64,000 nt of DNA. Source: Macrostomum lignano. Lineage: Eukaryota. Below, piece after piece: positions 1,425 to 40,409 of this stretch. The stretch is taken from contig NIVC01000713.1 in assembly GCA_002269645.1 (NCBI GenBank), forward strand, positions 248,001 through 312,000, given 5' to 3'. Numbering within the stretch: position 1 is the stretch's first letter; every line of letters starts with the position of its first letter. A program made the translations under genes and the position numbers. A model generated the notes under the pieces. It had not been told where the DNA came from and searched no databases. It saw only the letters and a list, made by a program, of their open reading frames with translations.

Positions 1425-1625
1425 GTTGTCACAGACAGTCCCATAGACCATCCTTGCCACAGACATTCCCGTAGACCATCCGTTCACAGACAGTCCATAG
1501 ACATTCCGTGACCATCACAGACATTCCCGTAGACCATCCGTTCCCGTAGACCATCACAGACATTCCCGTAGACCATCCGTGTCACAGACATTCCCATAAA
1601 AAATCCTGGCCACAGGCAGTCACCT
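1425..1625. repeat. Intronic tandem repeat (cacagacattcccgtagaccatccgt-like)
   Basis: Several degenerate copies visible. Confidence 0.75.
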
Positions 1626-9061: not shown

Positions 9062-9219
9062 TGTAGGAGCAATACTGTACATGAGCCAGTTTGATCAGAA
9101 TAGGCTGGAGCTGCGTCAGAATGTCAGATAATCAAACATCCTGCCCCCACTAATCTTTGCGCACCTCCCCTTCCTTCCTTGTGGTTCCTGTCCCCCGTGA
9201 TGACTCATCCCAATGATGA

Positions 9220-16600: not shown

Positions 16601-17474
16601 GCTGTTTAAGGACAAGGTTGCCTTCCTGGGGTTCGTTGTGTCTAGCCGGGGCATTGAGGCTGACCCAGCGAAAACCCAGGCTGTCCAAGAGTGGCCTAAA
16701 CCGCTTTCTAAGAAACAGCTCTTATCCTTCTTAGGATTCGCGAATTACTACCGGAAATTTGTGCCGCGATTCTCAATCATCGCCACGCCTTTGTATGCCT
16801 TAGCCAAAAAGGATGCTCCGTTTCTATGGCAACCGCATCACGAACGGGCTTTCCAAGAACTCAAACATAGTCTCTGTTCACCACCGATTCTGGCGTATCC
16901 AGACCTCTCTGCCAAGGGGCGCGAATTTATTTTGGACTGCGATAGCTCGCTTGACGGCACCGGGGGTGTGCTGTACCAGCTCGGGCCAGATGGCCAAGAG
17001 CAAGTCATAGCTTACGCATCCAAGAAATTCAACAGTAGCCAGAGAAACTACTGCGCCACCATGAGAGAGTTGTTAGGGCTCGTTCTGATGCTCGAGCACT
17101 TCCGTCCTTACCTATTAGACAAGCCTTTCACTGTCCGGGTGGACGCGGCCGCGCTCAAATGGCTGCATTCTAAGAAGCATGCCACTGGTATGCTGGCCCA
17201 ATGGCTTGCCACCATTGAACTGTACCCGCTGAAGGTTCAGCAGTCCACTCTAGAACGAATAGCCGAATACGATTTCACAGTCCAGTACCGTCCAGGCGTT
17301 GACCACGTGCCTGCTGACGCTCTTAGCAGACTGCCAAAATTCAGAGCCGATCACTTTGACTGCCCGACGTGCAGCCAGATTCCAGAATTTAAAGGGAAAT
17401 TCCTGGACCAAGACCCAAAGCACCGGCGTACGCCCCCTCTAGAGAACTGCGTCAGGTGTGCGTCCAGACCATAG
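13698..17474 (+). CDS. Gypsy Gag-Pol: capsid, CCHC knuckle, cold-shock domain, aspartic protease, RT, RNase H
   Basis: CHRCGQTDHLIADC; NYGFI..LFVHIS; LDSGA; YLDD; LDCDSS..RELLG..DALSR. Confidence 0.95.
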   Translation: MSDNGDNHAAASLADGDAVVPDQDAVDAGEQPAGAAAAAAPAPSEQLLLTQTLASLHRMLDERLAVSSPSAPNSSPPAKPDIRLRPPIAYQPKMNFDTWEAQLTSYLATCRVPEDQKSAILVSLLSAECQEVYLNYRCDQLPFESALRLLRERYTDAKKKDKAYVELVAAAQSHNEQMSDFFDRLVSYSRLAGLSLAEAKPLLKARFCHGLRDKDLAEKLLLWDQETDSATSAEELMQKAKDLVGVRQLLNVPSTIAKVRAIEPDAEKKALEQRVAELEKMVTDQANRLSQTIPPVTTNQGPARTEPTGGPPQVSQTYRQPRPAPRRPRACHRCGQTDHLIADCPSPSPRPQSPKQPRGSQNQQPSRGKVTTELGTIATWSQNYGFIQSEHLPEKLFVHISQLSPSLRSLVEQHRLRGTRVKFQRQVDPGRQHDKACNVQPQPGDSDPQCRQGGYTADTFESSYFVQLGVGDSKVLACLDSGANASIMGADVKAKLVAADPVNNIFTPSANKQRATAFGGSQVDILGSLRCEINLGNTTKQHVFLVTAYCTTEALLGMDFLRSFEMLLDFNSGRALVAGVSVPVIEGDKGIFQLRRVMAAGTVELPPHSETLIPSRVLDSSPYTSGIVMSRILGPETEQLVAKTLDSVSDTNHILVRVLNSGEQPIQITRGQEIASFQELDSHEVIAQTTLKESDFSLDNVANLTSQLSKLPPPSRELAKWLTTQFQLDQAKLSRGQLATVLKLLNYFNSQISRSNADLGHTTLHEMGIELIDPKAKPVAQPYRRTTPAQKEFLDQNIAQMLEQGVIEECDSDWVSPIVLVKKKDGTQRLCIDYRAVNKLIKPCSFPLPLIEESFDSLAGATVFSSLDLTSAYWQVGIKEEARDYTAFACPQGTFRWKVVPFGIKTAPANFAKLMHKVFRPLLMKVSLIYLDDIIIKAVNNDQMIAHLALVLWQLRKAGLKIKPSKCELFKDKVAFLGFVVSSRGIEADPAKTQAVQEWPKPLSKKQLLSFLGFANYYRKFVPRFSIIATPLYALAKKDAPFLWQPHHERAFQELKHSLCSPPILAYPDLSAKGREFILDCDSSLDGTGGVLYQLGPDGQEQVIAYASKKFNSSQRNYCATMRELLGLVLMLEHFRPYLLDKPFTVRVDAAALKWLHSKKHATGMLAQWLATIELYPLKVQQSTLERIAEYDFTVQYRPGVDHVPADALSRLPKFRADHFDCPTCSQIPEFKGKFLDQDPKHRRTPPLENCVRCASRP

Positions 17475-18275
17475 GCATTAGCGTAGCGTGTCAGACTGAC
17501 ACAGATGCCCCGGCTGAACCAACGCCGAATGTCCGCGCTACTGCTAGCGGTGCTGTCCCTAGCCCAGAGACTGAATCCCGTCAGCCTGAAACCGAATCCC
17601 AAGTGCCACCTGAGCTCATCTGGGCCCAGAATGCCCAGGACTCCTGTGTTGACATGGCGCGCCTGATCGCCAGTGTCCAGTGTAAGACTGAGCCATTGTC
17701 CAAGGCCGAACTGCGGGATTGTAGCCGGGAAATGCGCTCACTCTGGGCTCAATTCAATGACCTTGAAGTAGTCGAGGGTCTATTGTACTTAGCTAAGTCT
17801 TCCAAAGCCAAGACTGCCAACAGACGCCTGGTGGTGCCTGAGACCGCAGACGTCAGTCATCTGGTCCTTCAGTATCATGGCCAGTTGAACCATTGCGGTA
17901 TCACCAAGACAATGGCCGCCCTGAAGGCGCGCTTCGTTATTTCCGACTTAGATACTATAGTCAAGGGGGTCCTGGCCGAATGCACCGTTTGCGCTAAGAC
18001 TAAGAAGTCAAAGCGTAAGCTCAAGGCCCCTATGCTACCAGAACTGTCCGGCTACCCGAACCAGGTTGTCCACGTGGACCACGCAGGCCCATTCGAAGAG
18101 TGTGAGGGATACAAGTACCTGCTGGTTATGATTGACCGGTTCACCGGGTTTGTCGAAGTAGTCCCTGTTCCCGACGTCAGCGCAGAGACCACTGCCACAA
18201 CCATCCTGACTGAATGGGTTGCCAGGTATGGGGTGATGGAGCAGTTGGTGTCTGATAACGGAACGGCCTTCATCA
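17456..18275 (+). pseudogene. Gypsy integrase (HHCC plus first two Asp of DDE), shifted frame, truncated
   Basis: YHGQLNHCG...CTVC, VHVDHAG, IDRFTG, VSDNG; stops before the catalytic Glu. Confidence 0.9.
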
Positions 18276-18668
18276 ATAGTAAAGGGCAAAAAAGCGTCCA
18301 CTGGAGAAACTGGATCATTCCCCAGCGACGGTCTCAAGCGATGCATTCAGGCTCGGCTACTTCGAGACTTCAATGGGTTGCCAGGTGGCACAAAGGTGTT
18401 AATTACCGAGCTGATCTCGGAACCGCCTGGCTGCTCTTTCTACTGCGCCGGGAGCACTTATTCCTTGCCTATTGATAAGTTTGATTTCGGTGAAGCCGAT
18501 GACCTGGCAATTGCGATGCATAATTATTCCGCTTTCGGCGTCGAAATCAAAGCCGGACAAATTGTCTGGACTTTGCGCAGGCCGACTCAGCATCGAAGAA
18601 AGTGGCTGGCATATTTAAACGGCAAAGCAGACTACTTTCCAGAGGAATATGCTCTGTCTTTGAATGAG
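18276..18668 (+). pseudogene. 5'-truncated twin-SH3 exon, copy 2
   Basis: KGKKASTGETGSFPSDGLKRCIQARL...KWLAYLNGKADYFPEEYALSLNE aligns with copy 3 GRNVSTGQTGIFPGDCLMRCIRANL...WWLGEYNGRAAYV..MPLDE; same phase-0 donor gag|gt. Confidence 0.85.
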
Positions 18669-18843
18669 GTAAGAGCCAGGTAGTCTGATCGTTGGATTTG
18701 AGTCAAATCATTTGAGACTTTAGAGCCTTAAAGTTTAATCGAGAATAACAAAATCGATGAATTTGACACTTGCCTCTTCCTAAAAATAAAGGCAAACACT
18801 GCGTTGATAAAACTTCAACTATATAAAAAAACACATTTTGCAG

Positions 18844-19329
18844 GCCATGAATCAGCTAGTTAAATTTGCCAAGGAAGGAGACTTTGACAGTGTCCGTAAG
18901 CTGGCAAATCCGGCACTAATGAAGATGCACGGCTTGCAAGGTCGCACCGTCCTGTTGATGCTAGCAGACGCTGATACTTACGCGAACAGCAAAATGCGCT
19001 GACTACATGATCCACTTAGGCTGCAATCCTTCCGCTACGGATTCTAAGGGGGACACAGCTGCACACCTGGCGGCGGGATGCAATAATCTGCAACTCCTCG
19101 CTTTGCTACCTTTTGAATCGAAGTGGCTGCAGAATGATCAGGGCCTGACGCCGCTCATGGTGGCGGTGGAAGCCGGCAAATGGAGGTGCATTAAACACCT
19201 ATTGCATCTCTTTCGGCAGAATAAATATCATCAATTCAAGACGGAATATCTGAAAGAGATGAAGTCCTGTCAAGATCTATCAGTTTTAGACATCGCGAAG
19301 CAGGCTGAAACTGCGGAAATGATCGAATT
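18844..19329 (+). pseudogene. Ankyrin exon (ANK-C), copy 2, one frameshift
   Basis: GRTVLLML, GDTAAHLAA, GLTPLMVAV; paralogous to 41135-41637; phase-0 acceptor, phase-2 donor tt|gtaggt. Confidence 0.85.
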
Positions 19330-20218
19330 GTAGGTTGGACCGGCTTATTGACATTTGCAACAGTTTGTTAGTTTGGATTAGACCATAATTATTACAAACT
19401 ATAATATCATGTAAAAATCTAAGAAGCATCAAAAATCAGAAGTGTTATATAAAGAATCATAGAAGCCTCATGTAAAAAATCATAGAAGTGTCATGTAAGC
19501 AATAATAGAAGCTGCATGTAAACCATCATAGAAATATCATGTAAAAAATCATATAAGCGTCATTAAAAAATCATAGTAGCGTAATGGAATAATAAAAAAG
19601 TGTCATTTCAAAAATAAAAGAAGCATCACATAAAACTGTGCTGTGACTCTTAAGGAGAATTACTATGAGTTCAAGGCTCACAGAGAATAACAGCTGTAAA
19701 GGATTATGGGGGGATTTCTGAGATGTCAAAGCAAAAGCCGGAAGCTACATATAGTTAACTGAAATTTTTTATTACATTCTTTGTTGGCTCGTCACAGGGG
19801 TGCTGATAGAAGAAGTGTCATATAAAAAAGAGGGGAATAGCTAATATGTCAAGACTTACAAGGGATTGCTGAGGTTATTGCAAAGAGAAGCTATTGTTTA
19901 AACATGTAGTTTATTCAAAAGTAGAATAAAGCCTTGACAAAAAAAGTGTCATGTAAAAAAATGTCCCATGAAACTGTAAAGAAATTGTGACTCTGGAGGA
20001 GAATTACTATTGATGTCAAAGCTTATAGGGGAAGATGTCAAGGCTTATGGGGGAATAACTGAGATGTTAAGGCTAAAGTTAGAAGCTACATGTAGTTTCT
20101 TCAAAACTTATTATATTATTTGTTGGCTCTTTGTTGGGATGTCACTGATAGAAAAAGCATCATGTAAAAAAAGAAGTATCATGCTGAAGTTAAGAGATTC
20201 ATTTGGGAATCCCCATGA

Positions 20219-20514
20219 CATACATGCGCAACAGTTGGCCAAGTCGGCCGATCCGGCCGACCAATTTGACGGCTAACCAAGGAAGTTGCAAAAATGCCCA
20301 CCCAAAAAAACCAAAGTAGTAGTACTAAGTAGCTGACGAGGCATTTTGACTTAATAAGACAGTCATAGTTACTCCTGCCGTTTACCCAAAGTTGCGTTAA
20401 TTTTGCGTTAGCATTTTTTTACATGTAAGTCGCATTTTTGGCCAAAAACTACGTCGCATTTTTGTTAAAACTAAGTCGCATGGCCGACCGAATTTTGGAG
20501 GTTGCGCATGTATG
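20219..20514. mobile_element. ~296-bp MITE-like element
   Basis: Perfect 14-bp terminal inverted repeats CATACATGCGCAAC / GTTGCGCATGTATG; GC-richer than flanks; no clear TSD. Confidence 0.6.
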
Positions 20515-20600
20515 CCCTATATGTCAAGACTTGCAGGGAATTGCAATAATACTATAGTGCTATAATAACTCTTGGGGAGAATTATTGAAATGTCAATGCT

Positions 20601-20640
20601 TTAGGGTTAGGGTTAAGGTTAGAGTAGGGTTAGGGTTAGG
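20601..20640 (+). repeat. Short interstitial TTAGGG-like tract
   Basis: agggttagggttaaggttagagtagggttagggttagg. Confidence 0.7.
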
Positions 20641-22378
20641 TTGACAGATTTTTTAAGATTTCAAGGCTTATGGGAGGTATCACTAAGATGTCAACAGGGA
20701 AAGTTGATATTTTAAGGCTTGTGGGAGGAATTGCTGACATGTCAATGCTTAGAAGGGACTACTAAGATATATTGCAAAGAGATGCTACATGTACTTTATT
20801 AAAAAACTTGTACTGCATTTTTTAGCTCCCAATGGGGCCCTAATTGCTAGTCCCATATACTAAAAATACACCTATTATATATTAACAACAATATGATTAT
20901 ATAGAAGTAATTTTGGCAAAAATGGCCTAACCAATTTTCATGAGACTTTGACTATTCAATCAGAAAATTTTCTAAGATAGTAATGTGTTGTTGCTAGGAA
21001 ATTGCTCAATGCTAAAGGGATTAAATATTTAAAACAAGCTTTATTGCAAGTATCAAGCAGATTCTTAAAGTTAAAACATATTGTTAAAATGCTAGAGAAA
21101 AAAACTAACATATAGAATTTTGATTCTGATTAAGATTGTATCATAGCTGAATTGTGATTCTAGCTTGAATTGTGGCAATGTGAAATGCCAAAATATGTTC
21201 CACATAATGTGGAAACATAACATGAGACTTAATTTAGATTATGCAACCACATTGTTAACTTTAATTGAAACTGATATTCACTGAATAAGAAATTGATTAT
21301 GTCATATAACTGCTTTGTGTGACTTTTACTCTAATAGAGTATGTAATATAATGTAGTAATGAGTAAGTATACCTAGGTGTCTAGGTGTCATGTGTACCTA
21401 GAAGAAGCATCATGTAAAATATCACAAAGTATGATCATGTATTACATAAAATAATTGTCATAAAATATAAAAGAAGCATCATATACAAAATAAACAAAAT
21501 TTCATATAAAACAAAAAAGCATTTGTGTTACTAGGTTTCTCTTTTGTGATAAGGATAGTATAGTATCTTGACTTTCAAAATTGCATCCTCAAATTAGACA
21601 TTATGCTTGAATGCAATTTTGCATCCTAGTGCCAGTGAAATAACCCTAGGCTATGTAATGTACTAGGGATGGTATGTAATATCCTGACTTTCCAAATCAT
21701 ATCCTGAAGTTTGACCTTTGATACAATTTTGCATCTTAGCACCAGTGAAAAAACCTAGATCATAAAAGTAATAACAAAAGAATCATCATGTTAGACAGAA
21801 GAAACATCATATAAAACATGAAAAAGCTCATATAAAACATCAAAGAAGTTATTATATGAAAATAATAGTTATTTCAGACATGTCAAAGAAGAAATCATGT
21901 AGTCTTTGTAAGAATTTCTATTGCTAAGATGTCAAGGCTTAGTTTGGAATTATTGAGATGTCAAGGCTTATGGGGAGAATTGCTGATCATGAGTAACAAG
22001 GTATATAGGGGGATTTCTTAGATGTCAAGGCTTAGGGGGATAGCTGAGATATTGAGGCTTATAGCAAGTAATTGCTGAGTTATTAAGGCAAAAGTACTTT
22101 TTCGATTTTAAAACTACAATAAACCCCTATATTTTGTATTATAGTTTTTTTAAAGGCTTTTATTTAAAATTTAAACTTTGTTTTTTATCACCCCATTAAA
22201 GTCAGATGAATATTTTTTTATTTTTTTGAAAATGCATTTCTTTCTTCTTTCTAATTAATATTTGCTTTTAATTCTAAGCAATTGGATTGCACAGTTATTC
22301 ATTTGCAAAAAACCCAACATTTTATTAAAATTTGCCATTTGTATTCATATTGGCAAGTCATGGGATCCCTGGGTTTTT

Positions 22379-22745
22379 TTAGAAAGTTTTTTTGAGAAAT
22401 ACAAATTGTAATATATAAAGAGCCTTAAAGTTGAGCTTAAAGCCAGTGAATATAGGTTTACAATACACTTTTAAACACAAAATGTTCCTAGAGCAGTCAA
22501 CTTTCATATCTAAAAAGTTTCTTGTGTCCATGACCATTTTCAAAGGTGAATTTGATATTAAGAGTAGGTTGATTGCTAAAACAAAAGTTTTATGGTCTTT
22601 CTCACTATCAAATACAGCAAGCATGTCATCAACATAGCATTTGTAAAACTTTGGTGTACAAGACAGTTTCAGCATTTACAGACTCCTGGTAAGTCATACA
22701 GAGATCAGCTAATGTGGGAGCTAAGGGGTTACCTTTACCTTTATG
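22379..22745 (-). mobile_element. Penelope-like reverse-transcriptase fragment
   Basis: GNPLAPTLADLCM...PKFYKCYVDDMLAVF...FLDMKV...VYCKPIFTGFKLNF, matching PLE RT motifs (YVDD, FLDV, VYRKPT). Confidence 0.8.
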
Positions 22746-23281
22746 CTATGTGTATATGATTTTCATTTTTATGTGTATCAAAAAATATATTTACATATAT
22801 AAGATACATATGCAGTTTTTATACCTAGGAGATATTTGCTTTTTAATAGCAATATATAGTTCTTTGTAATTTTATTAACATATTATAGCCAAAAATATTT
22901 AAATTTGCTACACAAAAATTTTTAATTAATATTAACTTTGGTAAAGTTGGTTTTTTACTATGTAAATAGTAGTGATATCTAATATTTTATGATTTAATAA
23001 TCCAACTTACTTTTGTACTTTAAAAAACTTCACATGTTTTATATTATCTGAAATTGCCCATTATTTCTTGATTATTTGAATTACAAGTTATAACAAAAAT
23101 TACCTCCAAAAATTTGCAGCATACTGCGCGCTGCATTGTGCAGCCGCTAGCAGGCACTGCAAAGCCTTAGGTTCTAACTTGATTAATCAGACTTTTGAGT
23201 TCTAAGCAGACTGTCAAAGAAGTGTAGAGCTCAAAGAAGTGTGATTCTACAGTTAGTGAATATTTAGTTATTAGCAACAAA

Positions 23282-23781
23282 ATGGGCTGCTGCTTTTCAA
23301 AGCACGCGGCAGAGCAACCCGGCCGGAGGTACATTGAAGATCCGCAGCAGCTGCAGCAGCAGCAGCAACAGCAGCAACTGGCGCCTGTTGCACAGTGGAA
23401 CAACCACATGGGCCATGCTGATGCGATACCAGGCCACATGCAGCCGCAGAGGCCGGGTAACAAATTCATGGGGCCATATCCGCAGCAGCCCATCGGCCGG
23501 CCCAACCAGCCAATGCCGATGGTTGAGCCGCAGCCTCCGCCACAGCAGCGCATCTTGGTCAGGGCGCTCTACAACTACAATGCCCAGAATCCTGACGATC
23601 TGGACTTTCGCAAAGACGACCTAATGGAGGTTTTAGGCGACACCTCCGAGCCCTGGTGGTACGCCAGGCACCAGCGCAGCTCCAAGGCCGGCTACATACC
23701 GTCTAACTATGTGCTCATTGACGACGGCAAGCCGACTTCGCTCAGATCCTGGTTCGAAATCAGCCGCAGAGATGCTGACAG
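23282..23781 (+). CDS. Orphan first coding exon of a Src-family-like gene: MGCCFSK acylation motif, Gln/Pro region, SH3, start of SH2
   Basis: ALYNYNAQNPDDLDFRKDDLMEVLGDTSEPWWYARHQRSSKAGYIPSNYV then WFEISRRDADR; donor ag|gtttgt (phase 2); no further SH2 or kinase exon seen in the window. Confidence 0.85.
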
Positions 23782-23835
23782 GTTTGTGTGGTCTGCAGTG
23801 CCGCTTGGTTTTGCTTTGGTCACTGGTTGGTATAC

Positions 23836-26277
23836 CCTAACCCCTGACACTCCAATTCCTGACACCCTAACCCATGACACTCCAATCCCTGACACCCTAA
23901 CCCCTGACACTCCAACCCTGACACCCTAACCCCTGACACTCCAATCCCTGACACCCTAACCCATGACACTCCAATCCCTGACACCCTAACCCATGACACT
24001 TCAATCCCTGACACCCTAACCCCTGACACCCTAACCCCTGACACTCCAATCCCTGACACCTTAACCCCTGACACTCCAATCCCTGACACCCTAACCCATG
24101 ACACTCCAATCCCTGACACCCTAACCCCTGACACTCCAATCCCTGACACCCTAACCCCTGACACTCCAATCCCTGACACCTTAACCCCTGACACTCCAAT
24201 CCCTGACACCCTAACCCATGACACTCCAATCCCTGACACCCTAACCCCTGACACTCCAATCCCTGACACCCTGACCCCTGACACTCCAATCCCTGACACC
24301 CTAACCCATGACACTCCAATCCCTGACACCCTAACCCATGACAATCCAATCCCTGACACCCTAACCCCTGACAGTCCAATCCCTGACACCCTAACCCATG
24401 ACACTCTAATCCCTGACACCCTAACCCATGACAATCCAACCCTGACACCCTAACCCATGACACTCCAATCCCTGACACGCTAACCCCTGACACCCTAATC
24501 CCTGACACCCTAACCCCTGACACTCCAATCCCTTAACACCCTAACCCCTGACACTCCAATCCCTTAACACCCTAACCCCTGACACTCCAATCCCTGACAC
24601 CCTAACCCCTGACACTTCAATTCTTGACGCCCAACTCCTGACACCCTAACTTCTGACACTCCAATCCCTGACACTGAAATCCTTTACACCCCAACCCCTG
24701 TCCCTGACACCCTAACTTCCGACACTTCAATCCCTGACACCTTAACCCCTGACACTCCAATCCCTGACATTTAACCCCTGACACTCCAATCCCTGACACC
24801 CTAACCCCTGACACTCCAATCCCTGACACCCTAACCCCTGACACTCCGATCCCTGACACCCTAACCCCTGACACTCCAATCCCTGACACCCTAACCCCTG
24901 ACACTTCAATTCTTGACGCCCAACTCCTGACACCCTAACTTCTGACACTCCAATCCCTGACACTGAAATCCTTTACACCCCAACCCCTGTCCCTGACACC
25001 CTAACCCATGACACTCTAATCCCTGACACCTTAACCCCTGACACTCCAATCCCTGACACCCTAACCCCTGACACTCCAATCCCTGACACCCTAACCCATG
25101 ACACTCCAATCCCTGACACCCTAACCCCTGACACTCCAATCCCTGACACCCTAACCCCTGACACTCCAATCCCTGACACCCTAACCCATGACACTCCAAT
25201 CCCTGACACCCTAACCCATGACAATCCAATCCCTGACACCCTAACCCCTGACACTCCAATCCCTGACACCCTAACCCCTGACACTCCAATCCCTGACACC
25301 CTAACCCATGACACTCCAATCCCTGACACCCTAACCCCTGACACTCCAATCCCTGACACCCTAACCCCTGACACTCCAATCCCTGACACCCTAACCCCTG
25401 ACACTCCAATCCCTGACACCCTAACCCCTGACACTCCAATCCCTGACACCCTAACCCCTGACACTCCAATCCCTGACACCCTAACCCATGACACTCCAAT
25501 CCCTGACACCCTAACCCCTGACACTCCAATCCCTGACACCCTAACCCCTGACACTCCAATCCCTGACACCCTAACCCATGACACTCCAATCCCTGACACC
25601 CTAACCCATGACAATCCAATCCCTGACACCCTAACCCCTGACACTCCAATCCCTGACACCCTAACCCATGACACTCCAATCCCTGACACCCTAACCCCTG
25701 ACAATCCAACCCTGACACCCTAACCCCTGACACTCCAATCCCTTAACACCCTAACCCCTGACACTCCAATCCCTTAACACCCTAACCCCTGACACTCCAA
25801 TCCCTGACACCCTAACCCATGACACTCCAATCCCTGACACCCTAACCCCTGACACTCCAATCCCTGACACCCTAACCCATGACACTCTAATCCCTGACAC
25901 CCTAACCCATGACAATCCAACCCTGACACCCTAACCCATGACACTCCAATCCCTGACACGCTAACCCCTGACACCCTAATCCCTGACACCCTAACCCCTG
26001 ACACTCCAATCCCTTAACACCCTAACCCCTGACACTCCAATCCCTTAACACCCTAACCCCTGACACTCCAATCCCTGACACCCTAACCCCTGACACTCCG
26101 ATCCCTGACACCCTAACCCCTGACACCTTAACCCCTGACACTCCAATCCCTGACATTTAACCCCTGACACTCCAATCCCTGACACCCTAACCCCTGACAC
26201 TCCAATCCCTGACACCCTAACCCCTGACACTCCGATCCCTGACACCCTAACCCCTGACACCTTAACCCCTGACACTC
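23836..26277. repeat. 2.4-kb satellite, 30-bp unit ccctgacaccctaacccctgacactccaat, with higher-order blocks
   Basis: Exact 30-bp period across 25020-25690; variant blocks recur (24612/24901; 24427/25908). Confidence 0.95.
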
Positions 26278-26366
26278 TCCGGACGCCGTTTCAGTTATGA
26301 ATTATACATTTCGCAATTGACTGTCGAATTATGTACTAACTCGCTATTAAAAAAACTGGATTTTAG

Positions 26367-29081
26367 ACTTCCTCATAAATCTGAGGGCCCTGCGGCAGCA
26401 GAGAATTCCGAGCGCCTGGTATTTACTCCACATTCTGAGAGATTAGAAAAAAAGCACCACAGAATTTGTCTTCCCTGCACCCAGTCGCCAAATTCGCTCG
26501 TCTCCTGCAATAAGGCCAGGGTCTGCCGACGAACACATAAGTGAAGCTGAGTCTTATTTGCCTGTAAGAAATCCTGTTCTAGAAAGTTACAATTCGCTCG
26601 GACAGACGCAGGTAGCGGTTGCTAGTAGTAACGGGGACAATACGACGCTAAGTAAGTTGCGTCAGTCGGTTGACAAAGAAGATCTTAAGCGAGCCGTTAA
26701 CACGCCAGACAACTCGCTGAAGACGCCTGTGATGCTTGCCGCTTTAAACAATTTTCCGACAACAATAAAGCTTTTGCACGAGATGGGAGCCACCGATCTC
26801 AGTCAAGGGGTAAGAGTAGCAGCAAAGTTTAAAATAGCGAATACATGTATTCGGAATTAGAACTAACAACAACAACAAAGGCGTTACACAGTCCCCGAGT
26901 AAGTCAGTGGAGGGAGCGTCAGATAGGCGCACCGAAGTGCCAGCGAGCAGACAATGTGGGCCCATTGACGGTTTCGGTCGCCCCAGCGTCGCTCAAGATG
27001 CAGTCTACGTATCTCCGGGTCCTCGTTTGACCCCGCCTGAACGGTCCTGGCGTATTGAGCAGCTGCACAGGACGAGGGCAGGAGCTTTCAGCCCCGGATC
27101 ACGTTGCTTGCCAGTTGGAGATGGTGGAGTTAGAACTAGCAGTATCAATGTCTTACGCAGAGGGTCCCAGCACCCCACAAACATTGTAGCGCCCTCATAA
27201 AGAAAGCTCGATTTCCACCAATAACGAATGAGAGGAATTTAACTTTTGCCACCCCTTGGACGTGGTATTCACCAGCCTAGGAGACGCGGGTAGGGGCGCC
27301 CATCAAGAGACAGAGATGCCAACCCAGGAGATCAAACCCAGACACCAGATGGCAGTGTTAAATTGATTTTTTGTCAACCTTTTCAGGACCGAGCCAAGCT
27401 AACGGCTCTTGCGCACGCGGCTATGCGAGGGAACAAGGACTGCATTGCCGTTCTGCTCTCTCTGGGCGCAGAGCCTCACACAGAAGACTTTAGCGGTAAT
27501 ACGCCTCTGATCTGGGCGACTAGAGAAAACCACGTTGGTGTAATTGAAAAACTGAGTGAGGTTCTGCAAAATCTGTCGAATTGGACACATCGTGGAGAGT
27601 ATAATATGAGCGCGTTGGAGTGGGCGACTTACTTGCAGCATCATGAGATTGCGAATTTGATTGTGCTGAGGTAAAGGCTTCTTTCTCTGCTCAAGTTTAC
27701 CTCTTTACACTTCTTCCGCTTCAAAACTGTATTTGAGTGTACATTTGAAATTATAATTTCTTTTCTAGACTTACACACAGTGAGCGTAAAAGCGCACAAC
27801 TTTTACAGCGCATTTTCTGGTGCAGGCGTCTAGAGATACAGTGTATAGCAGTGTAGTGGAGAATGAAACTGATTGTCGTAATCTCATTCCAACTAGCGCT
27901 ATCAAATAAGAAGCACACACTTAAGCCTTTTCGTTTCGCAGTTTTATTTTTATAGTCTCTTTCTCTCGTGCCTAAGTAACTGCTTTAGGCTGTATTCAAG
28001 TGGTGTTTTGGCTTAATTGTCTGGCCAAAAAGCTAGGTAATCTGTCATCATTATACTCGTAGCTGGTATATCTTTATACGGCATTAAGCATCCATATTCT
28101 AAAGAATTCCTAACTACACTACTCACGAGTAGACAGAGCAAATATTCTTTAGATAAACATCGATCCAGCTTTCACAATTTTATAACCGTTGCCTCTGATA
28201 ACGTAGGATATGAATTTGTCGTCTTTTATGAACATTATAGCCACTTTTTTAAATCCAGCATCAACAGCCTCCAAACCGATGCTCGGGCTCAAGAAGCTGC
28301 ACAGGAAATGCCATCAATTGAGGCTTCTGAAGCAATCAGTGCACAATTACCGCTACCTGCGCTTCTGCCCAACGACCGATACCGGATGCTGAGCAGGCCG
28401 AGCTCAAGAGGCGTTGCCATCATAATAAATAATGTGGATTTTGACAATACAGACAGGAGAAACGGTGCGATGGCGGACACCCATGAGACAGGACTGTACC
28501 AAGCCTTCGTCAAGTTGGGATTGCGCGTTGAGATTCACCATAATTTGAGTAGCCACTTTTTCAACAGCCACAATCTAATCAGCCTAAACAGGCATGAGAC
28601 AGAGTACGAGCAGCACGATGTGTTCGTGCTCTGCGTTATGAGCCACGGCGAGGACGGCCACATAATTGGTTCTGATGGTGGGCGAATCGAACTCGAGCCT
28701 TTGTTCAACCAGGTGCGCCAGTGCGACAGCCTTGCTGGCAAGCCGAAGATATTTATAGTACAGGCCTGCCGCTTGTTGAGTACCTCCCATCCTGCAGAGT
28801 CAGCCAATGTCATTCGCGGCCAAGACTGTCTGTATATCTACAGCGCTTGCAGAGGTCAGCTGTCGGGGCGAGATCCCAACACTGGTTGCATATTTATTCA
28901 AGCGCTCAAAGACGAAATCTTGGCCGCCGACCTACGATCTGTCGAGTTCACTCACCTGCTGCCTAAAGTTGTCAAGCGAGTTCTGGAACTGACTAACGGC
29001 GCTCAGGTTGTGAGTTCGGAGACAACTCTTTCTAAGCTGCTGTGCCTTCCACCAACACGCGATCTGTTAACCAATCCGTAA
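26367..29081 (+). CDS. Ankyrin-caspase gene, copy 2, 3' half (exons 26367-26809, 27387-27670, 28259-29081)
   Basis: Acceptor attttag|a as in copies 1 and 3; one apparent frameshift in an A7 run (~26447); NSLGQT, KTPVMLAA, NTPLIWAT; phases 0 and 2 as in the other copies; caspase exon uninterrupted. Confidence 0.75.
28259..29081 (+). CDS. Caspase (peptidase C14) exon, copy 2, intact
   Basis: RGVAIIINN, RRNGAMAD, CVMSHG, GKPKIFIVQACR, DCLYIYSA, SGRDPNTG. Confidence 0.93.
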
Positions 29082-30509
29082 ACGTCTAAAGTGCCATTTA
29101 CTCATTTGAGCTCGTATAACTACATGTCCGAGCTATATAGCTTTAAACTTGAATGACAGACGACTTCTTAGTTATACGGTCAGCCAGTTTTTTATAAACA
29201 TGCCATTAACATTGATTGCAGTATTATACTCTGTGATACTTTTTTAAACGTTACTCGTACGAGCGTATATTAATACTTGAAAAATGTTTTATAACAGCAA
29301 CATTGATATATAGCTACCTCTTGTGGATATCTAATTCTGTTTTTATAAATCTCTACACTAAGAAATCTCACGTGCGCCACTACAGTATTAAAAACATTTT
29401 CGAACATTTTTAAGCGTTGGCATGCCTCGATCTAAAGCGTCATCTGGCTTTTACCTAATGATTGTAAAGTAGTCTGATATGCTCTATATTAATCGTGTGG
29501 ATAAACGCTGAATTCGCATTGATAGCTTCGATCAGAACAATTTTTTTCCGTAGCTACTAAAGATTCCCAAGGAAAAATATGGTATTGAGAATTAGACACA
29601 GTTAAAGAACTACATTTTCCATCGCTATTTGAAATGCGGGTGTCTGTCTTGGTTCTTAAAGTTATGTTCGATTTTGTATGCACCAGTAACTGAAATGCAT
29701 TTGCTACAGAAATACGAAAACTATATAGGCATCCATGTAACTTCTCATTCTTTTGACTTGAATAGAGAATAGAATACTGAGCACTATACAAAAGTTGTAA
29801 AACTTGCACTCTAATTCTGTGATGTTAATTATTTATTTATTTATTTCCAAAGAAATGTTTCACTTTTATCTGTTTTCCTCAATGAGACTGCAGGCAGCTA
29901 TATTTATCCAGAAATTTGTTTTGGGACAACAAAGCAAGGAAAAAATCGTACCAACTGTCATCCGCTGTATAAAGTCAGTTTCTTCCTATCTCGGGGCATT
30001 CATTTCTTATGCAACTTTTGTGTGATCTCTACGCTTTTATTTTTTATATTGTCATGAATTTTAAAATTAAAATATAATTAAATTCAGTCAGCCATGATTA
30101 GAAATACAAAATGCACTTTATTTCTCATATTTATACTGACATTATACTTACATGCATGTCTGATGCATAATGTCTGATGCATACTGTAAATGTACTCGTA
30201 CGATGACTGAATCTCACCCCAATCTCATACTTTTGTACAAGTTATATTCATCTCATGAAGTTCTGGACTCCAGTGTAGGGTATTATGTACTTCAGCTGAA
30301 CTTTAGTACCTGTGACAACAGCAACAACATACGCGGCCCTGCAAGCAAAGGTCACAGTTAGAGCAGGGCGCGTCAGATGGCGCGCCGCAGAGCCTGGGAG
30401 CGAACAAAATCCGCTCCGTTGGCAGTGTCGGGCGCCCCAGCGTCGCACAGCAGGCAGTCCGCGTATCGTTTAGTACCTGTGAGAGTATTATACATAATAA
30501 TAGCTAATA

Positions 30510-31367: not shown

Positions 31368-32234
31368 TTATAAGCATTGAGACAGTTTGCGAACAGCCGC
31401 CAGCTGGAGATCGAAGCCTTTCTCCAGCCCCAGGTACACCTCAACCGCCGAGCTCCGCCAGTCTCCCAGGGCCTTGACGACCGGCAGCGGCACACCGGCG
31501 CGGAACGCCAGCGAGGCGCCGCCGCGTCGAAGGCTGTGAGGGGACAGAGACCGGTCTGCCATGCCGGCACGGTGGACGACGTGCTGAAACAGGCGACAGA
31601 ACCGGGTGCCGGTCAGAGGCGTCAGGCCGCCGCTGCTTCGGTAGGCGAAGAGGTGGGCAGCAGCGGCGCGGTCGGGCTGGTTGATGCGCAGGTGGTGAAG
31701 CAGCGCTGCCACCGGGCAGAGCGGGTGCTGCACCGCGTGCCGGAGGCGCGGCAGGACAACGCGGTGCACTCGCTGGCGGAACTGGTTCGTCTTGGAGCGC
31801 CGAATGTGCAGGATGGCCAGATCCGGTGATACATGCAGGTCGCCGCAGGTGACCGCCTCGCCGGCTGGTGGGAACGGTTTCGAGCAGCACAGATTGGCGC
31901 GGCGCAGGAGGCCCCAGAATCCGACCAGGACCGCCGCCCAGAAGGCTGCATCTTGAGGCTGCTGCAGGCGCAGGGTTCCTCGCAGTTTGAGGAGGTCACC
32001 CGGAGTGATGGGCGCCTTGCGCGCCGGTGGCTTGGCGAGTTTGCGCTGGACACCGCGGAGGAGCAGGTCGATGCGGGGGTCGCGAGGAAGGCCGCGGCCG
32101 GTCTTGAGCTTGCAGTGCAGGTCTGCGGCGTTAATGTACGCACCGACGCTGGCATGCGAGGAGAGGCGGTCGGACAGCGCGATGATGTAGTGCGCTACCT
32201 GCTGCAGAGGCGGTCTGGTGCTGTCGATGCGCAT
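31368..32234 (-). CDS. Tyrosine recombinase of the Ngaro element
   Basis: GFWGLLRRANL, IRRSKTNQF, HSLRRGGAS, LGDWRSSAVEVYL (R-K-H-R-W-Y catalytic set). Confidence 0.95.
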   Translation of the reverse strand: MRIDSTRPPLQQVAHYIIALSDRLSSHASVGAYINAADLHCKLKTGRGLPRDPRIDLLLRGVQRKLAKPPARKAPITPGDLLKLRGTLRLQQPQDAAFWAAVLVGFWGLLRRANLCCSKPFPPAGEAVTCGDLHVSPDLAILHIRRSKTNQFRQRVHRVVLPRLRHAVQHPLCPVAALLHHLRINQPDRAAAAHLFAYRSSGGLTPLTGTRFCRLFQHVVHRAGMADRSLSPHSLRRGGASLAFRAGVPLPVVKALGDWRSSAVEVYLGLEKGFDLQLAAVRKLSQCL

Positions 32235-34388
32235 CTGCTTGCAGAACCGCTTCCAGGAGTCGATCTGGCAGCGGTAAAAGCGCGCGGTAGTCTCAGCGAA
32301 GGCCAGGTGGCAAAGCTCGCGGTAGCGTTTGCTGAAGTTCGCGCTCGGGACTTGAGGCGGGCGATCTGTTGGGCGAGAAATTCGCAGGTGGCTGGCGAGA
32401 GGGTGTGCTCTCTAAGGTTGCTAAGGTCAACGTGAACAGAGCCAAAGAGCCGGAGCAGGAAGTTTGTCAGCTCGCTGATGTCATCGGCTCGGCTGCCACT
32501 ATCAGCGAAGATCTGGAATGTCCCGGGGACGTGGAAGGCCTGGACGGAGAGGTCGCGGTGCGCAGCGAGGAGCATCAGCTGTTGCAGAGCCGAGTTGACG
32601 ACCCGATTTGGCGACGAGCCCTTGTTGATGGCGCCGACTGCGGCGGTGCTGTCAGAGTAGATCACAAGCTGGCTGCCCAGTTGCAGCTGCTGCTGGAAAT
32701 GCAGGGCCGTAAGCACTGGCGCGAGACTTTCCTTGAAGTTGACGTGCAGCGGCTCGATCTCGGTTGAGTCGCGGTGCCAGTCCATGATGAGCCAGCTGGT
32801 GATGTCTGGGCCGCGGATGATGCCGCAGCCGCCCCAGTTGGACGCGTCGGACTCGATGGCCCAGCTGGGCCCGTTAGAACGCCAGATTTTGCAGCTGGGG
32901 GAGGCGGCCAGGCAGGCGTCCCACCAGCTAAGGATCTCGCGGAGATCATTGTGCACGCGCAGTTTATGCCGCTGCTGCTTCAGGTCGCTGAGTTCGAGCA
33001 GGAGTGGTCTCAGGAAGCACCTCCCGATGCGGACCACCTGGCAGACCCAGTTGATGCGGCCACAGAGCGATTGGAGCTGGCGCCTGGTGATGCGCTTGCG
33101 AGAGAGCGCGGAATGCAGCTGAGACTTGGTGGCGTCGAGCTTGTCCTTCGGAAGCTCCAGCAGGCCGCTGACGGTGTCGATGAGGACGCCCAGGTAGACT
33201 AGTCTGGTGCACGGCGCCACCACCTTGCTCCAGTTGATGGAGAAGCCAAGCTTCCGCAGCAGATTGAGCAGGGTGTTGAGAGCGAGCTGGCAGTCGTCCT
33301 TGCTGGAGGCTGCTATGGCGAAGTCGTCGAGATAACTGCCGATATCGTTGAAGCCCCGTCTCTGCATCATGCGCTTGACAGCCTGGCTCAGGCGGTGGAA
33401 AACTTCCATGGAGGCAGCAGCGCCAAAGGGGAGCCGCGTGTCGCAGATGTACGAATCGCTGCGCTGGTCGCTGAATTTCCACTTCAAGCCGGTGAGCCGA
33501 AAATCGTGCGGGCTGATGCCGACACTCCGGTAGGCATTGGCGAGGTCGACTTTGGCCATGAACCAACCGGGCTGCAGCTTGGCGGTGAAGTAACTGACGG
33601 TCTCGAACTTGATTCTGTTGTCGGAAGAAAATCGGCTGTTTAGGGAGAGACCCGGAGGGTTAGAGCAGTCGTGGATGAGACGAATCTTGTTGTTGCCCTT
33701 CGGAATGGCGCCAAGGGCGCTGATGACCTCCGGTTTGTCATTGACTTGAACGTAGCGGCCATTAAGGATTTCCTCTCGCATCTGCTGCTCGACCAGCTGC
33801 CGGTAACTGTTGACTGATAGGTAGTTCTGGATTTCTGACATAGTTGAGGCTCTTTCTGACGGGTCAGGGCAGGTGAGTTGGAAGCCGTTGCGGATGCCAT
33901 TCAGCAGGAATTCGCGGTCAGGATCATCAGCCAGCTCAGCTTCCCAGGCGGCTGTGGCGAGGTCGGATGAGAAAGCGACGGACTCGAGGGGCTTGGGACA
34001 GGGCCAGCCGGGGGGCAGCGGGGGTTCGACTTTGGCTTCGGCCGGGGCAGCTGCGCTGCCAGTTGAGCCCCCCGGCCGGCCGCAACAGCTGCCGGTAACT
34101 GTTGACTGATAGGTAGTTCTGGATTTCTGACATAGTTGAGGCTCTTTCTGACGGGTCAGGGCAGGTGAGTTGGAAGCCGTTGCGGATGCCATTCAGCAGG
34201 AATTCGCGGTCAGGATCATCAGCCAGCTCAGCTTCCCAGGCGGCTGTGGCGAGGTCGGATGAGAAAGCGACGGACTCGAGGGGCTTGGGACAGGGCCAGC
34301 CGGGGGGCAGCGGGGGTTCGACTTTGGCTTCGGCCGGGGCAGCTGCGCTGCCAGTTGAGCCCCCGGCCGGCCGCGATCTAGTTTTTTT
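32195..34388 (-). CDS. RT / RNase H of the Ngaro element, disrupted by an internal ~291-bp tandem duplication
   Basis: RLIHDCS, KVDLANAYR, LPFG, YLDDF, YLGVLID, ESDASNWG, HVNFKE, YSDS. Confidence 0.92.
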
Positions 34389-35443
34389 GAAGTGCAGAAC
34401 TGGCGCGGGTGCGCCTCGTAGCAGGCGGAGCAGACGTGCCTGAACTTGCAGTCGCGCCGTAGGCAGCCGTTGCGGTTGAACTTCACGCACAGCTCCCGCC
34501 CCTCAGGATCGATCGGGCCGACGAAGCCGGACGGCTGCTGCTTTGGCCTACTGGGCTTGAAGTTGGTGCGCTGGGAGATCGCGTTGCCGCCCTGATTTGA
34601 CTTTGGTGCCAGAATGTGCTTGGATAGCGACTCCCGCTCCCAGCTGCCGCTCGACTGGTGTTGCAGGATCCTGAAGTCTTCATCGTAACAGTTGAGGGCG
34701 GCATGACTGAAACCCTGGTGCATAAACTCGCCGAACTGCACACAGTAGTGAACGTAGGCCTTCAGCTGTTCAAGATCCACCGCGCCATCCTTAACGGTGA
34801 CCAAGAACCCTTCGTCGAGGAGTTTCAGCAGCATTCGGTTGCTGCCTGCTACCCACTGACCCGCCGAGATCTGCTCAGTCCGGACTCTAGACTTCTCGCC
34901 AGAGGCAGGCTCCTCGCCATCACGGTTGATAAAGTCCTTTACCAGAAGGGGCTTTGACGGTCCTGACGGCCTGGCAGAAGTGCTGTAGAGGCCTTGAGGG
35001 CCCAGGTCTGGCAGTCCCAGCTCCGGCTCATAGGCAGCAGGGGACCGGTCAATCGGCAAGGGGCTCCGCAACTTACGGCTCTGTTGGCAAGGCTTGTTCT
35101 CCAGCTCAGCCTCGATCTCAGCAGTCTGGCGTTGAAGAGTCCTCAGCCGAAGCAGTTTCTCCTGACGGGCGATCCTCTTGTCCAGATCGTCGGTGCCCTG
35201 CGGGGCGCCAGCCTCGTCCAGGGTCGCTTCTTCATCGTCGTCGCTGCTGCTGGTGCTGACTCGGTCGATTTCGCTCGAGTGAGTGGCTGTTGGCCGTCCA
35301 CGTCGCTTGGCTTGATTCGAGAAACTGGCTTGTTCGAGTCTGACTTGCAACTCTCGCTTGCGACCGCCACTGGACAGTCCCAGTTGGCGTAGACGGTCTC
35401 TAAGCTGCCTTGCAGTCATTTGGTCAATTAAAATCTCGGCCAT
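34193..35443 (-). CDS. ORF1 / Gag-like protein of the Ngaro element with N-terminal SAP-like motif and C-terminal CCCH-type finger
   Basis: MTARQLRDRLRQLGLSSGGRKRELQVRL; CVKFNRNGCLRRDCKFRHVCSACYEAHPRQFC. Confidence 0.85.
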   Translation of the reverse strand: MAEILIDQMTARQLRDRLRQLGLSSGGRKRELQVRLEQASFSNQAKRRGRPTATHSSEIDRVSTSSSDDDEEATLDEAGAPQGTDDLDKRIARQEKLLRLRTLQRQTAEIEAELENKPCQQSRKLRSPLPIDRSPAAYEPELGLPDLGPQGLYSTSARPSGPSKPLLVKDFINRDGEEPASGEKSRVRTEQISAGQWVAGSNRMLLKLLDEGFLVTVKDGAVDLEQLKAYVHYCVQFGEFMHQGFSHAALNCYDEDFRILQHQSSGSWERESLSKHILAPKSNQGGNAISQRTNFKPSRPKQQPSGFVGPIDPEGRELCVKFNRNGCLRRDCKFRHVCSACYEAHPRQFCTSKKLDRGRPGAQLAAQLPRPKPKSNPRCPPAGPVPSPSSPSLSHPTSPQPPGKLSWLMILTANSC

Positions 35444-37027: not shown

Positions 37028-38013
37028 ATGATGGTTCCGTCTCCCCGACTTCTGTTGTGCGTGGCTGCCTGCTGCTTTCTGTCACTGCAGACCGTCTTTG
37101 CCGGATGCCGATCGAAGTGGAAGCAGCTCCGAGGCGACATCACAGAGTACAAGCTGATCACTGTGCTCAATTTTCCAAAGATTACCGACTGTCTGATGAA
37201 ATCGTCAGCGGCCGAGGCTCACGCAGCCTCCTTCGACGCTGAGTCGGGCGACTGCGCCCTGCTGCAGTGCGACCGGTGCGGCAGGGACGCCTGCAGGAAG
37301 TGTCGACACGAGAAGGACGCGAGTCTGCCGATGCTCTGGGTAGGTGACCCGTTTCACTACATTTTTTCCATTTAGCATGATAACTGATATAGTTATTGAG
37401 CCAAACAGTGGATTTTAATCGACGTTGCTGGTTTGTACTTCAGATCAAGGATCCACCGAAGACTTGCTGGAAGACGTTCCAGCGCAGAGTCGACGGTTCC
37501 GTCAGCTTCAACCGGAACTGGTCGGAGTACGCGAGCGGATTCGGTCAGGGCGAGAGTCTCAACTACTGGATGGGACTGGAGCAGCTGCACCAGCTCACCG
37601 CCACTGGAGTGTGGAGAGTCCGCTGGGAGTTCAGCGACTGGAATGACAACTGGTACTGGGCTGAGAATGCTCCGTTCTCTGTAGGCCCAGCGGCTGACAA
37701 ATACAGGTGCTCGATGGGTCCGCTGGACGCGAGCAGGTCGAACGTTAGACAACCGACGGGGTTAGCTTCTTCATCAATGAATGAGTCGTTTAGCACTCCT
37801 GATTCTGATAATGACAATTGGCCCTATGGGAAGTGCGCTGGACGTTCTGGCTGGTGGTACAGTTAATGCGCTTTCATGAGCCCGAATGAACTTTACCCGT
37901 ATCCTCCTTACGCGTATGATAACATGGGTATCTACTACTTTTTGTCTCACTCTGACCCCGTGTTGCGAGTGAAATGCTCCATGAAGACGTTCGAGCGCAT
38001 GATTCGGCAGTAA
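37028..38013 (+). pseudogene. Secreted PAN-like + fibrinogen-related domain (FReD) gene; exons 37028-37339 and 37444-38013; one in-frame TAA at 37864
   Basis: Signal peptide; WKTFQRRVDGSVSFNRNWSEYASGFG, YWMGLEQLHQLT, FSTPDSDND, GWWYS*CAF...MIRQ; phase-0 GT-AG intron. Confidence 0.88.
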
Positions 38014-39857: not shown

Positions 39858-40409
39858 ATGGCCAGCAACAGCACGGGCGAACCAGAGGACTGCAGCTACA
39901 CATACGCGGCAACTCGCTGCCAATCAGCCTCGGCAGATGGGAGGGTGCTAGCTGTGCAAACAGGTGACCTTATTTGTGCCTGTAACCCGCCTTTATTTGA
40001 TAGTCCAACAATCCATGGTCGAAACGTATCAACGGGCCAGACGGGAATATTTCCCGGCGACTGTCTCATGCGATGCATCCGGGCTAACTTGCGCAGCAAC
40101 TTTGACCAGCTGCAAGCTGCTGCAGAGGTGCTGATCACTGAGATCAGAATGCAACAGCCCGGCTGCCCGTTCTACTGCGGCGACAGTTGCTACACCAGGC
40201 CAATCGATTGGTTCTATTTTGACTGCGCGGAAGATTTGGCAGTTGTTATCCGCGCCTACTCGGCCCGCGAGGAGGACGAGCACAGCCTGGCAGTGAGCCA
40301 AGTTCTGTGGATTCTCCACAGGCGTACAAGCGACCTCGGCTGGTGGCTGGGCGAGTACAACGGAAGAGCGGCTTATGTTCATTGCAGCTGCGTTATGCCA
40401 CTTGACGAG
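39858..40409 (+). CDS. Twin SH3 exon, copy 3
   Basis: Degenerate SH3 (VQTGDLI...GRNVSTGQTGIFP) and a second SH3 (VIRAYSAREEDEHSL...GWWLGEYNGRAAYV). Confidence 0.8.

Follow-up and report, generated by a model that had tools for sequence, protein, structure and literature searches.

Macrostomum lignano is a free-living flatworm whose genome multiplied very recently. The only caspase reported from this species carries a kinase-like pro-domain, and caspases with ankyrin (ANK) pro-domains form a platyhelminth clade reported to be unique to parasitic flatworms (PMC11463336). We analyzed a 64-kb stretch of contig NIVC01000713.1 in the M. lignano assembly Mlig_3_7 (GCA_002269645.1), called the window below (contig position = window position + 248,000), and found in it a tandem array of three units, C (418-4709), A (18276-29081) and B (39858-47989), built on the plan SH3-like domain, ankyrin repeats, disordered linker, ankyrin repeats, caspase. 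Unit A encloses a lone exon that homology assigns to the Src kinase family. The account we favor, at a probability of roughly 60%, is that a stranded 5′ fragment of a Src gene was captured in a decaying subgenome copy of a native SH3-like/ANK/caspase gene.

Three kinds of described systems offer a comparison. Flatworm Src-family kinases (for example P0068, 548 amino acids: MGxC, SH3, SH2, kinase) have a Met-Gly-Cys start, a Pro-rich unique region and an SH3 domain like those of the window exon, and share with it the SH2 start W[FY][DE]I[SG]RR[DE]ADR; unlike these kinases, the window holds the first exon only, with the remainder of SH2 and the kinase domain missing from the 64 kb. Chimeric genes of the jingwei type and fusion genes of recent polyploids likewise place the 5′ exon of one gene before same-strand 3′ exons of another, phase-matched and with a possible open reading frame (ORF), but here the conserved junction stops early, the donor is atypical and the recipient is multiply damaged, and the locus is known from genomic sequence alone. 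Mlig_3_7 comprises three paralogous subgenomes with a single-nucleotide polymorphism (SNP) divergence of ~2.2% overall and 1.1% in coding sequence, together with large indel differences (PMC10733133). The pseudogenised duplicates of this neopolyploid genome (PMC10733133) resemble unit A in that one of about three copies carries indels, a transposon junction and frameshifts while its sister is intact. Where unit A departs from such relics is in the inserted fragment, a first exon that is intact, fits in phase and brings a start codon along; this is an uncommon situation, from which a new gene could still arise.

The Src-family exon and the damaged gene around it

An earlier reading of the window from its letters (the sequence-only reading) had proposed that a dually acylated Src N-terminus with its SH3 domain is spliced onto the second of three ankyrin-caspase copies. 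The exon itself was borne out. Its ORF, from ATG 23282, reads MGCCFSKHAAEQ, then polyglutamine, a Pro-rich stretch, an SH3 domain (Pfam SH3_1, residues 94-141, E=3.1e-14) and WFEISRRDADR, and these first 11 residues are all of the SH2 domain that the exon contains; a (GCA)11 tract lies within it. A start of the type MGxxxS/T with a neighboring cysteine is a signal for myristoylation and palmitoylation, and the exon begins MGCCFSK, with Met-Gly, a serine at position 6 and cysteines nearby. An exhaustive HMMER search over 1.84 billion representative proteins returned 3994 hits, and the best single-stretch matches were flatworm-type Src-family proteins, 50-58% identical over residues ~60-166. The matched flatworm proteins start MGxC, and the full-length ones run ADR(K/L)LL..GNPKGTYLIRPSS into SH2 and a tyrosine-kinase domain; because they begin in the same way and continue past ADR into these domains, homology identifies 23282-23781 as a genuine Src-family first exon.

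The exon's 500 nt make up 166 codons and a final AG, with GT next to it; it thus ends in phase 2 at 23781, as had been claimed, an end placed solely by the GT and by the loss of homology to Src proteins, which is abrupt at ADR. Truncated models of flatworm homologues place introns after LLLVGN or RPSS and not after ADR, and the break may therefore be the breakpoint of a captured fragment and not an exon end. The putative donor, GTTTGT, has a T at +3, where all 15 inferred donors of the caspase gene family have A or G. The claim that no SH2 or kinase exon follows also held: tblastn with P0001, an LCK SH2-kinase sequence and five flatworm Src homologues found none on either strand of the 64 kb, and nothing past 23.8 kb. 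Upstream, base composition shifts at 23120, just behind an acceptor-like site. A 35-nt spliced leader is trans-spliced onto about 30-39% of M. lignano genes (PMC8629364; PMC5730564), and the motif [T/C]TNCAG is enriched at its trans-splice acceptors (PMC8629364).

The Src exon lies on the same strand as, and upstream of, an ankyrin-caspase gene that is larger than the sequence-only reading supposed. Ankyrin and caspase exons occur three times in the window (copy 1 at ~1.9-4.7 kb, copy 2 at 26.4-29.1 kb, copy 3 at 43.2-48.0 kb), and these three copies are the 3′ halves of larger native genes. Immediately before copy 3, a Pfam scan revealed two additional ankyrin exons and an SH3-like exon (39858-40409), and paralogues of these upstream exons precede copy 2, at 18276-18668 and 18844-19329. 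An SH3-type domain ahead of an ankyrin-caspase, which the sequence-only reading derived from the Src exon, is already present natively, since family genes begin with an SH3-like exon. The conceptual protein of copy 2 is 100% identical to the M. lignano GenBank protein P0002 (BOX15_Mlig004809g2, 356 amino acids), whose gene maps to NIVC01000713.1 of Mlig_3_7.

Unit A has a sister copy, represented by the UniRef M. lignano protein P0214 (876 amino acids); across the exons they share, it matches the window at 95-99% identity. On the paralogous contig NIVC01000070.1, the gene next after P0215 opens with the same 88 residues as P0214 (25530-25793 of our sequence from that contig, L003). P0214 keeps a Met start, an unshifted ANK1 and the ANK-A exon, and it contains no Src sequence. 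Against this sister, unit A shows damage along its length. In exon 1, 124 of the 131 aligned residues match P0214, with homology beginning only at ~18276; the start codon and ~50 codons have been lost at a junction with a retrotransposon (~18270), whose rve match is cut at profile position 82/102, inside the integrase core, and is fused to exon 1. ANK1 is split by tblastn into matches at 18841-18984 and 18983-19264 in two frames, and the frameshift is not at a homopolymer (P0214 there reads TYARRTAKC). ANK-A has no counterpart between 19.3 and 26.4 kb, in agreement with the sequence-only reading; its paralogues stand at 418-898 and 42149-42636, and P0214 residues 324-476, which correspond to ANK-A, match only these paralogues in the window, at 35-45% identity. 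Within the intron that follows the shortened big exon, the window copy has a 1-nt deletion in the repeat-derived segment (26.9-27.1 kb) that serves as an exon in P0214. The caspase exon is closest to effector caspases 3 and 6 (Protein Data Bank alignment to caspase-3, E=2.5e-18).

Between ANK1 and the caspase half lie an AT-rich filler, the Src exon and a satellite. The filler (19330-23119) includes degenerate minisatellites and a (TTAGGG)~7 tract at 20601-20640, and no second copy of it occurs elsewhere in the window or in L003. The 2.4-kb satellite described by the sequence-only reading is present, with a 30-bp period at 23834-26277; 52 unique bases separate it from the putative Src donor, and no further copy of the family was found in the window or L003 (90 kb examined). 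Tandem repeats make up 15% of the M. lignano genome, in which the mean intron measures 1.1-1.4 kb and the mean gene 7.5-9.4 kb (published figures). As an observation in its own right, the telomere-type tract upstream of the Src exon has its complement, CCCTAA, in every 30-bp satellite unit downstream of it.

These features suggest the following course of events. The fragment would comprise a Src-family 5′ untranslated region (UTR), the first coding exon and at most 52 nt of following sequence, and together with the filler and the satellite it would sit in place of two lost exons of unit A, a 52-nt small exon and ANK-A. Capture would have accompanied a rearrangement in which a redundant subgenome copy, damaged already, lost ANK-A. 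That copy appears to be decaying: its 5′ end has given way to the retrotransposon junction, ANK1 is frameshifted, ANK-A is gone, and the big exon is both shortened and broken at a run of seven A. Coordinates are collected in Table 1.

Table 1. Positions of the array units and of the elements in and around unit A.
Feature	Position	Strand	Remarks
Unit C (copy 1), 3′ part	418-4709	+	ANK-A 418-898; mini exon 1226-1258; big exon 1891-2988; ANK-C from 3078; split caspase
3′-truncated long terminal repeat (LTR) retrotransposon (gag/protease/reverse transcriptase/RNase H/integrase)	13698-18275	+	Pfam RVT_1, RT_RNaseH, rve
Unit A exon 1 remnant (SH3-like)	18276-18668	+	Donor GTAAGA; 41.6% identical to unit B exon 1
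Unit A ANK1 exon	18844-19329	+	Frameshift ~18984; phase-2 donor GTAGGT
AT-rich filler	19330-23119	.	27-38% GC; in place of 52-nt small exon and ANK-A
Putative Src-exon 5′UTR	23120-23281	+	After acceptor-like TTTGCAG/; second, CTACAG/, ends at 23252; UTR role suggested by sequence
Src-family kinase first coding exon (by homology)	23282-23781	+	MGCCFSK acylation motif, polyQ/Pro-rich unique region, SH3, 11 SH2 residues; flatworm Src homology
30-bp satellite	23834-26277	.	Unit ACCCTAACCCCTGACACTCCAATCCCTGAC; 81.6 copies; 90% matches
Branch-point-like TACTAAC (26334-26340) and ATTTTAG/A acceptor	26334-26367	+	First exon base 26367; TACTAAC 27 nt before AG
Shortened big exon (ANK-B) of unit A	26367-26809	+	A7 run 26447-26453; alternative acceptor 26484/26485; donor GTAAGA
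Intron between ANK-B and ANK-C, with dispersed repeat	26810-27386	+	~26905-27130 used as exon in P0214 model
ANK-C exon of unit A	27387-27670	+	P0002 coding sequence starts at ATG 27423 (MRGNKD)
Caspase exon (p20/p10) of unit A	28259-29081	+	Catalytic His (MSHGEDG) and Cys (QACRL); Pfam Peptidase_C14 E=1.2e-30
Unit B, intact-looking native paralogue	39858-47989	+	8 exons, 1556-aa ORF

Junctions, annotation and competing explanations

We then asked what a transcript beginning in the Src exon could encode. The stretch 23782-26292 is C-rich and nearly free of AG (2 AG versus ~51 expected), and the first AGs past the satellite are at 26293-26294 and then 26365-26366. The second belongs to the conserved phase-2 acceptor that the sequence-only reading had pointed out: the 8-mer ATTTTAG/A at 26360-26367 also precedes the big exon in the other two units (1884-1891 and 43191-43198). 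Joining 23781 to 26367 gives AG+A = AGA, as that reading stated, and there is indeed an A7 run at 26447-26453, just past which the ankyrin frame opens. The product, however, is not the one envisaged: the frame runs 59 codons to TAA at 26542-26544 and yields 225 amino acids with no ankyrin or caspase sequence. Acceptors after AG 26294 and AG 26366 both lead to this stop, with two further junctions still to follow. Were the Src exon transcribed, the most likely partner of its weak donor would be one of these first AGs past the AG-free satellite, and because the resulting message would stop at 26544, the outcome would be a truncated acylated SH3 peptide or degradation, and not an SH3-ANK-caspase. 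We infer that any splicing is most likely non-productive and that the captured exon probably lacks function.

A different acceptor restores part of the original proposal. Splicing at 26484/26485 (tttgtcttccctgcacccag/T), which has the most pyrimidine-rich tract in the interval (0.75), is phase-compatible (AG+T = Ser), and because it enters an uninterrupted 643-aa Src-SH3/ANK/caspase ORF, an in-frame chimera would exist on paper without any correction of the sequence. A junction via 26455 is likewise in the open frame, so that 26485 or 26455 gives at least 643 amino acids. The frameshift on the 26367 route would vanish if the run were A6; an assembly error of this kind is possible and not favored, because the assembly was polished with Illumina and RNA-seq reads. 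The frame interruption may be real and shared with the sister copy, which is consistent with the gene annotated at the start of the sister copy on the paralogous contig (579 amino acids, without a caspase domain) and with the P0214 model, which jumps to an acceptor at 26612.

Around these acceptors, in 26278-26578, no similarity to the paralogues beyond an 8-9-mer is detectable, and family homology begins at ~26579; when 26200-26700 was compared with the unit B and unit C big exons by blastn and low-stringency tblastn, nothing significant appeared before that point, and in a three-way DNA alignment upstream of ANK-B the sequences were too diverged to inform. Two candidate correspondences, of AAENSERLVF with SAEEIERLF of unit C and of 26295-26330 with a mini-exon remnant, were dropped since there is no significant similarity upstream of ~26579.

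The GenBank annotation bears on which junctions are used. P0002 is the only gene between 17.5 and 29.1 kb, with a coding sequence that begins at Met 27423 in ANK-C, and none is called from 17474 to 27423. This start would be expected if the mRNA were trans-spliced at 27387, or if the repeat-derived segment were included, whose frame, devoid of ATG, stays open as far upstream as ~26907. It would not be expected if the annotated transcript joined ANK-B in frame to ANK-C, because the start would then fall on an upstream Met (MLAALNN); between 26447 and the Met of PVMLAAL, within the ANK-B repeat, the ankyrin frame is free of ATG. The Src exon was found in no protein of a 5.8-billion-cluster collection or of the deposited set, and units B and C of the window have no deposited proteins. 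We initially considered these absences as silence and dropped this as weak, because transcripts overlapping repeats were filtered from the deposit. We also dropped the interpretation of the suffix.g2 as the second gene of a transcription unit, because the methods text and other locus tags show that the prefix denotes a 95%-identity transcript cluster. A literature search on Mlig004809 gave no match.

Several observations weigh against the capture of a fragment by a decaying copy. The Src exon shows no decay, with its 166-codon ORF intact and its SH3 and SH2-start residues conserved, and the 162 nt before its start are free of ATG, with the start in a good context (acaaaATGG); such an intact fragment is consistent with very recent capture or with continued use. 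No close M. lignano relative of the exon was found in the protein collections searched, where the best relative is 56-58% identical, and the parental locus was thus not found. The Src donor and the family acceptors are both phase 2 and on the same strand, a phase match that occurs one time in three by chance, and the open 643-aa frame behind 26485 has been described above. The absence of the Src exon from the annotation is weak negative evidence, because the deposit leaves out transcripts that overlap repeat annotations: the exon carries (GCA)11, and the intact-looking unit B is missing from the deposit as well. Finally, unit A differs from P0214 at 13/272 amino acids over its 5′ half and at 4/324 over its 3′ half (Fisher p=0.012, small sample). 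By the measure of the published SNP rates between paralogues, the first of these values looks neutral, which speaks for decay, and the second resembles that of ordinary coding sequence. The 3′ half diverges less than the ~5% neutral expectation (binomial P=0.0003; P=0.03 if one copy drifts), which suggests that it may still be in use.

Several of these observations also speak for a functional, exon-shuffled chimera, in which promoter or trans-splice site, start codon, myristoyl/palmitoyl anchor and a canonical SH3 domain would all come from the Src exon, spliced in frame to ANK-B, ANK-C and the caspase, so that a copy deprived of its 5′ half would be rescued. The elements stand in the right order, the Src exon is intact behind a clean leader, the caspase catalytic residues are in place, the 3′ half is less diverged than neutral drift predicts, and with the native start destroyed any protein containing ANK-B would need a new 5′ exon. 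However, the donor has the exceptional T at +3, and two AGs precede 26485, the latter with TACTAAC 27 nt upstream, both leading to the stop. The annotated ORF starts at 27423, the junction protein is not in the databases searched, and the 579-aa caspase-less gene at the start of the sister copy suggests that the caspase half is a separate ORF without the Src exon. A membrane-tethered, acylated SH3-ANK-caspase made via 26485 (or via 26367 if the run is A6) and born after the very recent genome duplication is thus unlikely, even if it is the best placed of the alternatives. The sequence-only reading's SH3-ANK-caspase is not supported by way of 26367, in a locus that is a damaged duplicate with an annotated start at 27423, and survives on paper by way of 26485.

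An assembly artefact, with the contig switching between loci or subgenome copies at the satellite or the filler so that the Src exon does not truly lie upstream of copy 2, would be favored by the makeup of Mlig_3_7, in which subgenome-chimeric scaffolds account for 36% by length and multi-mapping read pairs for 93% (PMC10733133). The left half of unit A is also ~4 times more diverged from P0214 than the right half, and the two halves could stem from different copies, so that the contrast in divergence noted above could alternatively reflect an assembly switch between subgenome copies. The sequence-only reading had named a misjoin across the satellite as a real alternative. In that form it is unlikely, since both flanks of the block of Src exon and satellite are exons of unit A: the 7-kb block has ANK1 on its left and ANK-B on its right, in order and in orientation. 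Upstream synteny with L003 is colinear to ~10.3 kb. With 52 nt between the Src exon and the satellite and 3.95 kb between the exon and ANK1, two misjoins within 7 kb would be needed to take it out of this locus; a 2.4-kb array fits the length of PacBio reads, and the satellite family is unseen elsewhere in the 90 kb examined. Even with a subgenome switch within unit A, the Src exon would stay inside a unit A copy. We therefore rank artefact after the chimera, as improbable.

Fainter still is the prospect of a stand-alone, acylated SH3-only protein acting as an adaptor or decoy, of 215 amino acids if unspliced, where the read-through ORF ends in the satellite, or of 225 via the 26367 junction. 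Its tails would be satellite-derived or unconserved sequence, the 215-aa sequence is absent from a 15-billion-protein collection, and mRNA decay would normally follow from a stop placed before two more junctions. Least likely of all is a complete Src gene with its other exons outside the window: the intact exon looks functional and the window ends 40 kb downstream, but no SH2 or kinase exon occurs in those 40 kb, and a first intron of >40 kb holding the ankyrin-caspase units, far above the mean lengths of M. lignano introns and genes, would span two same-strand multi-exon genes and begin at an exon that sits within the unit A exon series.

Native caspase genes and other elements of the window

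The eight exons of unit B (39858-40409, 41135-41637, 41717-41768, 42149-42636, 42726-42758, 43198-45097, 45566-45849 and 47131-47989) form an uninterrupted ORF that encodes an SH3-like domain, ankyrin repeats, an acidic stretch from a 45-bp repeat, ankyrin repeats again and a caspase, and its seven introns all follow the GT-AG rule, have GT[A/G] donors and fit in phase. The repeat, at 43689-44430, has 16.5 copies in frame in the big exon and encodes ~16 x PERPE[VI]GNEVSSED[PL]; unit C has a far shorter version of this linker, and in unit A hardly any of it is present.

For unit C, splicing can be followed in P0215 (BOX15_Mlig003046g1), a transcriptome-based GenBank annotation on NIVC01000070.1, which joins the unit C ANK-A, an 11-aa mini exon and the big exon to read KLLSQ/YEGRSYFEVAG/ASQARHSL via ATTTTAG/A acceptors. 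This 8-mer is the phase-2 acceptor of the big exon and is fed by the phase-2 donors of ANK-A and of the mini exon (YEGxxYF). The caspase region of unit C in the window (4034-4709) lies in three reading frames, with further frame breaks in ANK-A (651-666) and in the big exon (~2080). In the paralogous copy of unit C, the annotated protein P0215 (951 amino acids) runs out of frame and stops short of the caspase domain. Because the window copy is split over three frames and P0215 ends before the caspase, it seems that more than one copy of unit C is without its caspase.

Ankyrin repeats and caspase p20/p10 occur within one ORF in unit B (1556 amino acids), in P0214 (Ank_2 and Peptidase_C14) and in P0002 of copy 2. 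The catalytic His and Cys (SHG and QACR) align with those of caspase-3, the motifs RxG and SGR, which include the S1-pocket Arg, can be read in the sequence, and the domain scores best against effector caspases 3 and 6 and insect caspase-1. With the platyhelminth ANK caspases these genes have in common ankyrin repeats N-terminal to a caspase p20/p10 with catalytic His and Cys; they differ in having an additional N-terminal SH3-like exon, a long disordered or repeat-bearing linker and a tandem arrangement.

Elsewhere in the window, the retrotransposon joined to unit A has a 1258-aa ORF annotated as a GenBank gene (full-length relatives have 1921 amino acids), and its gag has a zinc knuckle and a cold-shock-like domain. 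The dispersed repeat in the unit A intron at 26810-27386, which is a coding exon in the UniRef model P0214, has partial copies at 30356-30467 and in L003. NIVC01000070.1 is ~97% identical to window 1-10.3 kb except for 8469-10027, which is inverted (~1.6 kb) relative to L003 21320-23621. On the minus strand, 31368-35443 is a DIRS-like element with a gag-like ORF bearing an SAP domain, a reverse transcriptase ORF and a tyrosine-recombinase ORF, and with a 292-bp internal tandem duplication at 33794-34374. The plus strand has an ORF with a fibrinogen C-terminal domain at 37028-37866, and the minus strand has ABC-transporter ATPase and transmembrane ORFs among 22-26-bp satellites at 53871-56699 and a long coiled-coil ORF (DUF6944/TMF-like) at 62233-63921. 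Rfam and tRNA scans of the window gave no matches.

Meaning for M. lignano and its caspases

Duplicate decay and the capture of gene fragments in a neopolyploid genome are known kinds of event, and Src first exons and acylation signals are textbook matter. If a Src fragment was indeed captured by a decaying copy, unit A would be a clear but ordinary case of neopolyploid spare copies decaying and picking up pieces of other genes. For users of Mlig_3_7 it means that one unit differs strongly between subgenome copies, and for annotators that P0002 is the tail of a broken gene. If the chimera were true instead, exon shuffling would here have been caught, as it rarely is, in the making of a lipid-anchored caspase, and in an animal that can be made transgenic. 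More useful than the Src locus itself is a by-product of its analysis: the tandem SH3-like/ANK/caspase genes appear, from their sequence and domain order, to be an unreported variant of ANK caspases, and they would give a free-living flatworm tandem caspases with ankyrin pro-domains and a preceding SH3-like domain.

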